DNA from: Gracilinanus agilis
Lineage: Eukaryota
NCBI RefSeq assembly: GCF_016433145.1
Contig: NC_058133.1
Span: 172,855,964 to 172,919,963, forward strand
Reading direction: 5' to 3'
DNA length: 64,000 nt
Position 1 is the stretch's first letter, and every line of letters starts with the position of its first letter. The notes below the pieces were generated by a model. That model was not told the DNA's origin, made no database searches, and saw only the letters and a program-made list of their open reading frames with translations. Below are positions 12,722 to 63,169 of this stretch, piece after piece. Made by a program: the position numbers and the translations under genes.

Positions 12722-13048
12722 ATCTCGAAATTTTCCCAAAAACTGTTCTATAATGAGAAGATTTTGAAAAAGAACAGCACGAACAGCACGATCAGCTCGA
12801 ACAGCACGATCAGCTCGAACAGCACGATCAGCTCGAACAGCACGATCAGCTCGAACAGCACGATCAGCTCGAACAGCACGTCCAGCTCAGAGCGCAAAGA
12901 TATGCCCATCATAGACAACTTCCGGCCAATACAGAAGGATGGGGGCCGTTCAGTCTTTCACAGTGGGGTGGAAGGACTACTGCCCCATACCTGGCCCACG
13001 TTTCTGGCCCCTCTGCTGACCTACCTCCTGGCCGTCCTCCTCTACTGA
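12722..13048 (+). CDS. CA4: CA4-like terminal exon 8 with (NSTISS)n insertion and GPI-anchor signal
   Basis: Acceptor gtcttttacag. Reads ISKFSQKLFY...DNFRPIQ...HSGVEGLLPHTWPTFLAPLLTYLLAVLLY*, with the DNFRP motif and a hydrophobic C-terminus typical of a GPI signal. Exons 2-8 total 1001 nt in one frame without a premature stop. Confidence 0.95.
   Translation: MSKFSQKLFYNEKILKKNSTNSTISSNSTISSNSTISSNSTISSNSTISSNSTSSSERKDMPIIDNFRPIQKDGGRSVFHSGVEGLLPHTWPTFLAPLLTYLLAVLLY
12773..12889 (+). repeat. Coding 18-bp tandem repeat (AACAGCACGATCAGCTCG)x5 with flanking partial units
   Basis: AACAGCACG, then five identical 18-mers (12782-12871), then AACAGCACGTCCAGCTCA. Encodes NST-(NSTISS)5-NSTSSS. Confidence 0.97.
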
Positions 13049-61737: not shown

Positions 61738-61845
61738 CACATTACAATTCTGACTTGAATTTTGGATCTTTCTTTGAGAAGTGCCAAACTAGAATGATCC
61801 AAAGATCCATCCCCCATTAAAGACTCAATTTCATGGCCTACTTAC

Positions 61846-62270
61846 TGAAATTGCATATAAGTTGTAAATAGGTTTAACACAGACATCTTCTCTTTGGTCA
61901 TCCACGCTATCTTCCTCACTGTGGTTTTCCATATGACCATTGCTGCAGCCATTATTATAAGCATCATGCTCATAAAGGAATCCGTTAGTCAAAGTGGTCT
62001 CATGATCCTGAAGAGTGAATAGTTCAGGTTGGCTGCCACCTAATACATGCCCTTTGCTCATGGCATCTGCCAGATCAAAAGGCTGGTCAGTGCCATTCTC
62101 TCTACTGGCATCCAAGTTCTCTTTACTATTTGAGAGTTTGTTTTTGCTGCCAATTTGGGGCAGTCGAAGCCGCCCTTTGCACCTTCCTAAAGTCCGTGGG
62201 CTGCTATTTGGGCTGCTATTTTTGCTTGAAGGACAACTGGTACCACTTTTCCTTGCTAAAGAAGGCGAAC
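61846..62270 (-). CDS. USP32: USP32 exon (GSPSLARKSGTSCPSSKNSSPNSSPRTLG...KPIYNLYAIS)
   Basis: Acceptor tcttttacag and donor gtaagt; 425 nt, phase 1/0; Ser-rich insert and YNLYAIS motif. Confidence 0.95.
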
Positions 62271-62734
62271 CTGTAAAAGAGGATGAATTCACAAGAATTA
62301 ATTTATCCATTAAAAAATAAATAGGAGCCGGCTTAAAATTCTTATTTGGAAAGAGGATAATGAGAACACTCAGATTTGTAGCTATTTATCTTGCATGCTA
62401 CAGAAGAAACAATTTCACTTCCTCTACCAGGTCACTCCAAACTGAGTGAGATTTATAGAAAGATAGAAAAATCTTAAGACATAATGATTCAAAGGCAAGA
62501 AAGTCCTGAAAATGTTCCCTATAAGGATATGAAGGTGAGATATTTTGGTCTCAATTCAATATAACAGAACACTTAGTCTAAGAGTTACAAATATACACTC
62601 CTCTCTCTAGACCAAATCAAAGGCAAATATTAAAAGAAAAGATTGTTGTTTCCAGGAGTCTCAACAAAGCTTACCTAGTGTGATTAGTAAGGTGACTCAT
62701 AATGGTTTTGTTATCTTTGCCACAGATCTCTTAC

Positions 62735-63026
62735 CTTTTGTGTTACAGATGATGTTCCCACTCAGTGAGGATGGACTCTTGCTCAACATATCCCCCTCCC
62801 CTGTAGTCCATGTGTTCTGGAGATCCACTTTCTTTACTTCTCCCTGTATAATCCGTGGCTCAGAAAGATCATCCCCTTGGGGTGTGAGTAGTTTTCGTTG
62901 GCACAGAGCTGGATCCCTTGGCACAAGAAAAGCACTGGGGTCGAAACTTTCACGAGGAAATTTAACTATTTTCTGTGATTTTATCCAGCGACCATTCACA
63001 AACTGAAATCGTTTTAGATGAATTAT
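62735..63026 (-). CDS. USP32: USP32 fourth-from-last coding exon (IIHLKRFQFVNGRWIKSQKIVKFPRESFDPSAFLVPRDP...NTK)
   Basis: Minus-strand acceptor tttttccctcag and donor G|gtaaga; 292 nt; matches the USP32 catalytic domain. Confidence 0.95.
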
Positions 63027-63169
63027 CTGAGGGAAAAACAGTAAAAAGCATCTGTATCCAAAAGATGTGACCAAGGTAGCTCTCTAAAATCAAAGTGATA
63101 TAACATGGTAAGATAATAACAATTTGGAAATTTTAGAAATAATTTTTCTTTAAGTGCCTCAAAATATCA

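Follow-up and report, generated by a model that had tools for sequence, protein, structure and literature searches.

The last exon of a carbonic anhydrase 4 (CA4) gene in the didelphid marsupial Gracilinanus agilis contains a tandem array of short repeats whose translation is rich in Asn, Ser and Thr. This locus raises the question of whether the array is a genuine part of the coding sequence and, if so, how it arose inside an enzyme fold and what the encoded cluster of N-glycosylation sequons would mean for carbonic anhydrase IV (CA IV). The stretch of DNA analysed comprises 64,000 nt of contig NC_058133.1 and is called the window below. All coordinates are those of the window, and features lie on the plus strand unless stated otherwise.

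Results and Discussion

A seven-exon CA4 gene with an intact core

Seven plus-strand exons were rebuilt, with AG/GT borders and compatible phases throughout. Exon 1b (5428-5469; DWCYESQKDSHCPG), which encodes the first disulfide pair, is bordered by AG and GT, fits the phase of the next exon and aligns with exon 1b of marsupial CA4. Exon 2 (7923-8078) contains the equivalent of Cys23, the motif QSPIDIV and the motif NNGH with His64; besides its splice sites, it is identified by a match to Pfam PF00194 (Carb_anhydrase; E 4.7e-11). Exon 3 (8206-8351; PF00194, E 1.5e-14) provides FHFHW with the zinc ligands His94 and His96, and GSEH with Glu106. MHIVH with His119 is located in exon 4 (9112-9210; PF00194, E 5.9e-5). 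The assignment of exon 5 (9665-9731) rests on its AG/GT borders and on tblastn matches to Monodelphis CA4-like. Exon 6 (10195-10358; SLTTPNCDEKVVWTVF) carries the equivalents of Thr199 and Cys203 and matches PF00194 with an E-value of 3.1e-16. The last exon (12722-13048) was delimited by translation, splice acceptor and alignment; it encodes the end of the last helix, the insert, the DNFRP strand and the GPI signal, and closes with the stop codon at 13046-13048. Exons 2, 3 and 6 score above the PF00194 cut-off and exon 4 just below it; jointly, the matches cover profile positions 5-253.

The core of the enzyme is intact. His64, His94/96, Glu106, Glu117/His119 and Thr199 are all present, in the motifs NNGH, FHFHW, GSEH, EMHIVH and SLTTP. 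Four Cys residues at the aligned positions DWCY, HCPG, GSCQ and PNCDE constitute the two-disulfide set of CA IV, which corresponds to C24-C36 and C46-C229 in the human precursor (PMC7470082). By homology, a GPI signal is predicted at the C-terminus (12962-13045). It consists of the putative attachment Ser (12962-12964), which is part of a Ser-Gly pair shared with other CA4s, and a 27-residue propeptide that closes in a hydrophobic run. The Ser-Gly pair aligns with S284/G285, the proven GPI site of human CA IV (PMC7470082). The preliminary description of this DNA had listed His64, His94, His96, His119, Glu106, Thr199 and four Cys as present; all of them were found in the upstream exons, and the intact GPI signal that it had reported agrees with the alignment. 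In an alignment with 20 other CA4s from bowfin to mammals, 41 of the 42 invariant columns are kept by the window protein, despite an identity of 65-66% to its nearest relative, which argues against a decaying pseudogene. The mass of the encoded polypeptide is 33.8 kDa.

Human CA4 is located at 17q23, where USP32 is its tail-to-tail neighbour. Near the far end of the window, on the minus strand (61831-63074), there are two open stretches reading HLKRFQFVNGRWIKSQKIVKFPRESFDPSAF... and ...SSPNSSPRTLGR...KPIYNLYAIS, which we take to resemble the C-terminal exons of USP32. Support for this identity came from none of Pfam, PDB and Atlas.

A didelphid branch of the CA4 family

Relatives were collected by means of a representative search with exon 6, which led to P0091, a Monodelphis "carbonic anhydrase 4-like" protein. 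The hits of this search were mostly multi-domain CA fusions, and its use lay in reaching P0091. The onward search from there yielded isoform X2 of Monodelphis domestica CA4 (P0153), the CA4-like protein of Gracilinanus, the CA4s of seven Australian marsupials, and sequences from rodents, birds, a lizard, frogs and fishes.

In the maximum-likelihood tree, the window protein is placed inside mammalian CA4 (100/99), within the marsupials (95/89), and in a didelphid group of four (97/97). The other members of this group are Monodelphis CA4 and the two CA4-like proteins, and its three lineages form a trichotomy. The nearest protein is Monodelphis CA4 (P0153), with 66% identity over 287 columns. Pfam, the tree and the matches to PDB entries and folds thus agree on an alpha-carbonic anhydrase of the CA4 family, as had been proposed.

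The window protein itself did not turn up in searches of a collection of 5.8 billion clusters; the blank obtained with the last-exon ORF as query is weak, as low-complexity words saturated that search. In the databases and literature searched, neither a description nor a database model of a CA4 with such an array was found, which is in line with the earlier remark that no description of it was known.

The array is a coding minisatellite

The array spans 117 nt (12773-12889). A 9-nt half unit (AACAGCACG) is followed by six 18-mers, of which the first five are identical (12782-12871) and the last has diverged. Tandem Repeats Finder (TRF) reports it as 12775-12888, with a period of 18, 6.3 copies, 96% matches and a score of 207. 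When counted as copies of the 18-mer AACAGCACGATCAGCTCG, the five exact copies are flanked by one copy with two mismatches and one with three; these seven copies compare with 0.02 expected from shuffles. The translation of the array is NST-(NSTISS)x5-NSTSSS, that is, 39 residues with 27 Ser/Thr and seven N-S-T sequons.

The array is open in all three frames, and its coding frame therefore rests on the flanks, both of which are CA4 and in the same frame. Translated from 12722, the last exon reads ...KLFYNEKILKK, then the array, then ERKDMPIIDNFRP..., and it ends in LLY before the stop. The DNFRP motif (12914-12928), which corresponds to residues 243-247 of CA II, comes directly after the insert, and the Pfam profile resumes there with positions 219-253. 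Since the unit is 18 nt long, the frame would be kept at any copy number. Only one GT dinucleotide occurs inside the array, so that its removal by splicing is unlikely. TRF, translation and flank alignment agree in every detail that had been claimed for the array: 117 nt in frame within the last exon (12722-13048), 39 residues, 27 Ser/Thr and seven sequons. In-frame head-to-tail units of 10-60 nt within an exon define a coding minisatellite, and the array is of this kind.

The insert expands a variable surface loop

Across 21 aligned CA4s, few residues separate the last helix (...FSxKLFYNE) from DNFRP, except in the window protein and in Monodelphis CA4. At the same spot, the latter has a 10-residue Ser/Pro-rich extension, QSTPSPSSSP, and this extension closes in SSS before (P/E)(I/R)KD, as does the last repeat unit of the window protein. 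The didelphid CA4-like proteins have no loop extension. The shared loop indel suggests that the window gene and Monodelphis CA4 are sister genes, and that a Ser-rich seed is older than the array.

The expansion can also be expressed as the distance between the motifs WTVF and NxR. It is 75 residues in the window protein and 42 in Monodelphis CA4; with few exceptions, it lies between 24 and 35 in the other 160 single-domain relatives. The few relatives with a longer distance look like intron-retaining models, and the loop of the window protein is the longest among the 162 relatives. The corresponding loop contains a single sequon in bird CA4 (NST) and in wallaby CA4 (NES). The insert had been regarded as lineage-specific. 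This is correct for the array itself, which is absent from the 20 other CA4s; the site is not wholly new, given the Monodelphis extension and the single sequons of birds and wallaby.

The insert corresponds to about positions 234-236 of CA II. It is thus located inside the 230-240 loop and within the CA domain, after the last helix. According to a review, residues 230-240 of CA II form an extended loop on the surface, which is mobile and tolerates deletion; the thermostable SspCA lacks it (PMC4519908). The preliminary description had likewise spoken of a surface-exposed loop that varies in length among alpha-carbonic anhydrases. As a stand-in for the window protein, the structure of its nearest homologue P0153 was modelled. 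The AF2 model has a mean pLDDT of 89.9; among its structural matches, human and mouse CA IV rank highest, with TM values of 0.92-0.96. A helix at residues 243-252 is followed by coil, and the pLDDT is 75 over the extension.

Age and origin of the array

The 18-mer is made up of two 9-mers that match at seven of nine positions. A period of 9 (80%) is listed by TRF as well. The apparent history is therefore the duplication of a 9-mer, divergence of the two copies and amplification of the resulting 18-mer. The array contains 12 CpGs in 117 nt; for the whole window, the observed/expected ratio of CpG is 0.108. Because five units are identical and all CpGs are intact, the last amplification or homogenisation must have been recent. 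In general, the copy number of minisatellites is expected to vary among individuals. It is likely that it varies among animals here as well, judging from the perfect units and intact CpGs of one haplotype.

We propose the following course of events. The surface loop that joins the last helix to the DNFRP strand would already have contained a Ser-rich stretch. A 9-nt motif would then have been duplicated and have diverged into the 18-nt unit, which would recently have been amplified to about six copies by replication slippage or unequal exchange. Most likely, this expansion of a dispensable loop was tolerated and nearly neutral, and the array is probably polymorphic in copy number. Any gain in solubility or in shielding from proteases would be secondary.

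Predicted glycosylation of the loop

Of the 10 sequons of the window protein, seven belong to the array; the family median is two. The preliminary description had inferred a lineage-specific, heavily glycosylated variant. Heavy N-glycosylation as such is not unusual in the wider CA4/CA15 family, in which some fish members have 10-13 sequons. In these CA4-like proteins, however, the sequons are scattered, and no relative has more than five within any 45 residues.

The STT3A complex, which is associated with the translocon, can glycosylate adjacent NXT sites, and occupancy is less frequent where no more than about 70 residues separate a site from the C-terminus (PMC6761772). The sequons of the array are 57-90 residues away from the C-terminus of the precursor, the last three at 57-69. 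In the ER, most array sequons, perhaps not all, would thus be N-glycosylated. On the upstream ones, the STT3A complex would act co-translationally, and the last three would be more dependent on STT3B.

In the predicted product, a GPI-anchored CA IV, the catalytic core would be unchanged, and a flexible, N/S/T-rich loop of 39 residues would bear seven sequons. The glycans would add roughly 15 kDa to the protein surface, and the apparent mass would presumably be well above that of human CA IV. These properties presuppose that the array-bearing CA4 is expressed, as we presume.

The first exon and other upstream stretches

A search of positions 1-5427 by regex and tblastn revealed no clear signal-peptide exon (exon 1a). 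The gene for the CA4-like protein of Gracilinanus spans 17.5 kb and has its first exon far upstream; the absence of exon 1a from 5.4 kb of flank is therefore to be expected. Exon 1a may lie upstream of the window or inside the N run at 556-787, one of four N runs in the window. A weak candidate found by regex and tblastn (MSALFLTPFLIS...; 499-555) abuts this run. It starts with ATG, is pyrimidine-rich and loosely resembles the signal peptides of marsupial CA4 (MSLFL...) before it runs into the Ns. The stretch 4281-4353 was rejected as exon 1a, because its matches are weak (E 0.8-7), fall in two different frames and lack a usable donor; they were taken as chance.

The first coding exon of the NCBI model for Monodelphis CA4-like (P0091) is matched by tblastn at 3069-3137, with 18 of 23 residues. 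The translation of this stretch is MDPRILDLELESLREGSSSPEEG, without a signal peptide, and exon 1b follows 2.3 kb downstream. It may represent a first exon that the paralogues share and that is either alternative or spurious. Two long tracts of simple sequence were noted in the same region. One, with GA/GT-type repeats, occupies the start of the window (1-207); the other is a TG/TA-rich tract upstream of the CA4 gene (3471-3937) that reads CVYICV....

Alternative explanations

The explanation that we prefer, to which as a whole we assign a probability of about 0.6, is that the array is a real coding minisatellite inside an intact didelphid CA4 gene, where it expanded in a tolerant loop. Alternatively, much as the preliminary description had it, the dense cluster of N-glycans could be an adaptation, selected for protection from proteases or acid, for apical sorting or residence time, as lectin ligands or for masking the surface from pathogens. 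The strong N-S-T form is kept in all seven units, including the older, diverged end units; the didelphid CA4 genes are duplicated and combine a fast-evolving surface with a conserved core; and Monodelphis CA4 acquired an extension of this loop independently. Against this, the units are identical in DNA, so that the sequons persist without selection, and low-complexity expansions are common in tolerant loops. The rate of coding evolution does not decide in favour of selection either. Two faulty Monodelphis models translate intron stretches beside exons 6 and 1b (10359-10436 and 5374-5427), which made it possible to compare these with the window by means of P0154. Relative to Monodelphis CA4, 105/299 exon residues (35%) and 10/43 translated intron codons (23%) differ; the odds ratio of about 1.8 is not significant, and the intron sample is small and adjoins splice sites. 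It may be that the coding sequence of didelphid CA4 evolves at least at the neutral rate, with its invariant core preserved. An exon divergence that at least equals the intron level could be a sign of positive selection or of relaxed constraint, as opposed to an insert that is simply neutral. Taken together, we regard an adaptive glycan cluster as unlikely, if worth bearing in mind. One version of it goes further: duplicated didelphid CA4 genes would diversify on their surface, and the array would have been selected as a shield of N-glycans that covers the luminal side of CA IV and is tunable by copy number. Proteases, acid, a surface-binding pathogen or an altered apical residence are possible drivers. 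We give little credence to this version.

The remaining alternatives question the protein, the assembly or the fold. If the gene were an unexpressed or decaying duplicate, the insert would have no meaning at the protein level. This would be compatible with the missing signal-peptide exon, with the fact that its protein, annotated or derived from transcripts, did not turn up among the 5.8 billion clusters, with the high residue divergence and with the existence of a CA4-like paralogue in didelphids. However, a silent copy would hardly be expected to show seven open exons with canonical splice sites and to retain the deeply invariant residues, the catalytic residues, the Cys set and the GPI signal; the missing exon 1a loses its weight in view of the distant first exon of Gracilinanus CA4-like. 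We consider such a copy quite improbable. The array or its copy number might also have been mis-assembled from a shorter Ser-rich stretch, as five perfect 18-mers are hard to count from short reads and the window contains N runs. Yet the edge units are diverged, the clean and unique flanks carry on the CA4 frame, and the Ser-rich extension of Monodelphis demonstrates that the site is truly expandable. Moreover, an error in copy number would alter the count of sequons and not the finding, which makes an artefact very improbable. Finally, the ISSNST hexapeptides could form a short left-handed beta-helix instead of a disordered glycan carrier. The array (12773-12889) has a weak match to Pfam Hexapep (E 0.0013; 18.7 bits compared to a cut-off of 27), and there are weak PDB matches to GlmU and to the gamma-carbonic-anhydrase-like subunits of mitochondrial complex I. 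These scores stay below the curated thresholds and are explained by low-complexity bias; furthermore, two turns of a beta-helix are unstable alone, and glycans at every sixth residue would block its packing. A folded mini-domain is thus scarcely credible. When the last exon alone was compared with the PDB, no carbonic anhydrase and only weak hexapeptide-repeat proteins were matched, and a beta-helix deduced in this way was dismissed as low-complexity noise.

Comparison with known glycosylated and repeat-bearing proteins

The closest counterpart of the expanded loop is that of Monodelphis domestica CA4 isoform X2 (P0153, an automated NCBI model). Both proteins share the flanks KLFYNEKI ... PIIDNFRP, the GPI tail and a Ser-rich extension at the same position of the loop. 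The extension in Monodelphis differs in being 10 residues long and Ser/Pro-rich, which is more of the O-glycan type; it is not visibly repeated and contains no sequon. Human and mouse CA IV (PDB 1ZNC, 5IPZ, 2ZNC, 3ZNC) resemble the window protein in fold, zinc ligands, proton-shuttle His, the two disulfides and the GPI Ser-Gly. In contrast, the loop of human CA IV is short (YYDKEQT...) and without repeat, and no N-glycan is listed for this enzyme (PMC7470082), just as had been stated in advance. CA IV of rodents and CA XV are N-glycosylated (PMC7470082; PMC2835753). The single-sequon loops of bird and wallaby CA4 correspond to the expanded loop in location and differ from it in having one site and no repeat.

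A site that we take to be equivalent is N256 of human CA VI, just before the motif HNDYRR. N256 is a proven N-glycan site (PMC7470082). The proteoglycan-like domain of CA IX is likewise a repeat-rich, glycan-bearing extra segment on a membrane-bound alpha-carbonic anhydrase (PMC7470082). That domain is, however, a separate N-terminal module with glycosaminoglycan or O-glycan, old and conserved, whereas the insert is a young minisatellite in a loop and encodes N-sequons. Classic PTS mucin domains also differ from the array, which has no Pro.

In-frame coding VNTRs whose copy number sets the number of glycan sites on a secreted or membrane protein are found in MUC1, GP1BA, CEL, the salivary PRB3/PRB4 and LPA KIV-2. 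These VNTRs are located in tails, stalks or whole repeated domains and carry mostly O-glycans, whereas the CA4 array lies inside a globular enzyme fold and encodes N-sequons.

Implications for the CA IV family

The CA4 array, a likely coding VNTR that would make glycan sites inside the CA IV fold, is probably a minor, lineage-specific oddity. It has no bearing on any long-standing carbonic anhydrase question. If the idea of a tunable shield were true, this would be the first alpha-carbonic anhydrase with a glycan load that is set by a coding VNTR inside its fold.

Provided that the protein is made, the locus would cleanly illustrate how a young coding minisatellite adds N-glycosylation sites, each unit contributing one sequon. 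Furthermore, it would amount to a natural experiment, in which the 230s loop of an alpha-carbonic anhydrase accepts an insert of 39 residues that is probably heavily glycosylated. Such tolerance would be useful for the engineering of carbonic anhydrase surfaces and for understanding the origin of species differences in the loops and glycans of CA IV. Differences in the surface of CA IV matter for the species-specific binding of engineered AAV capsids (PDB 8JIF was among the structural matches).
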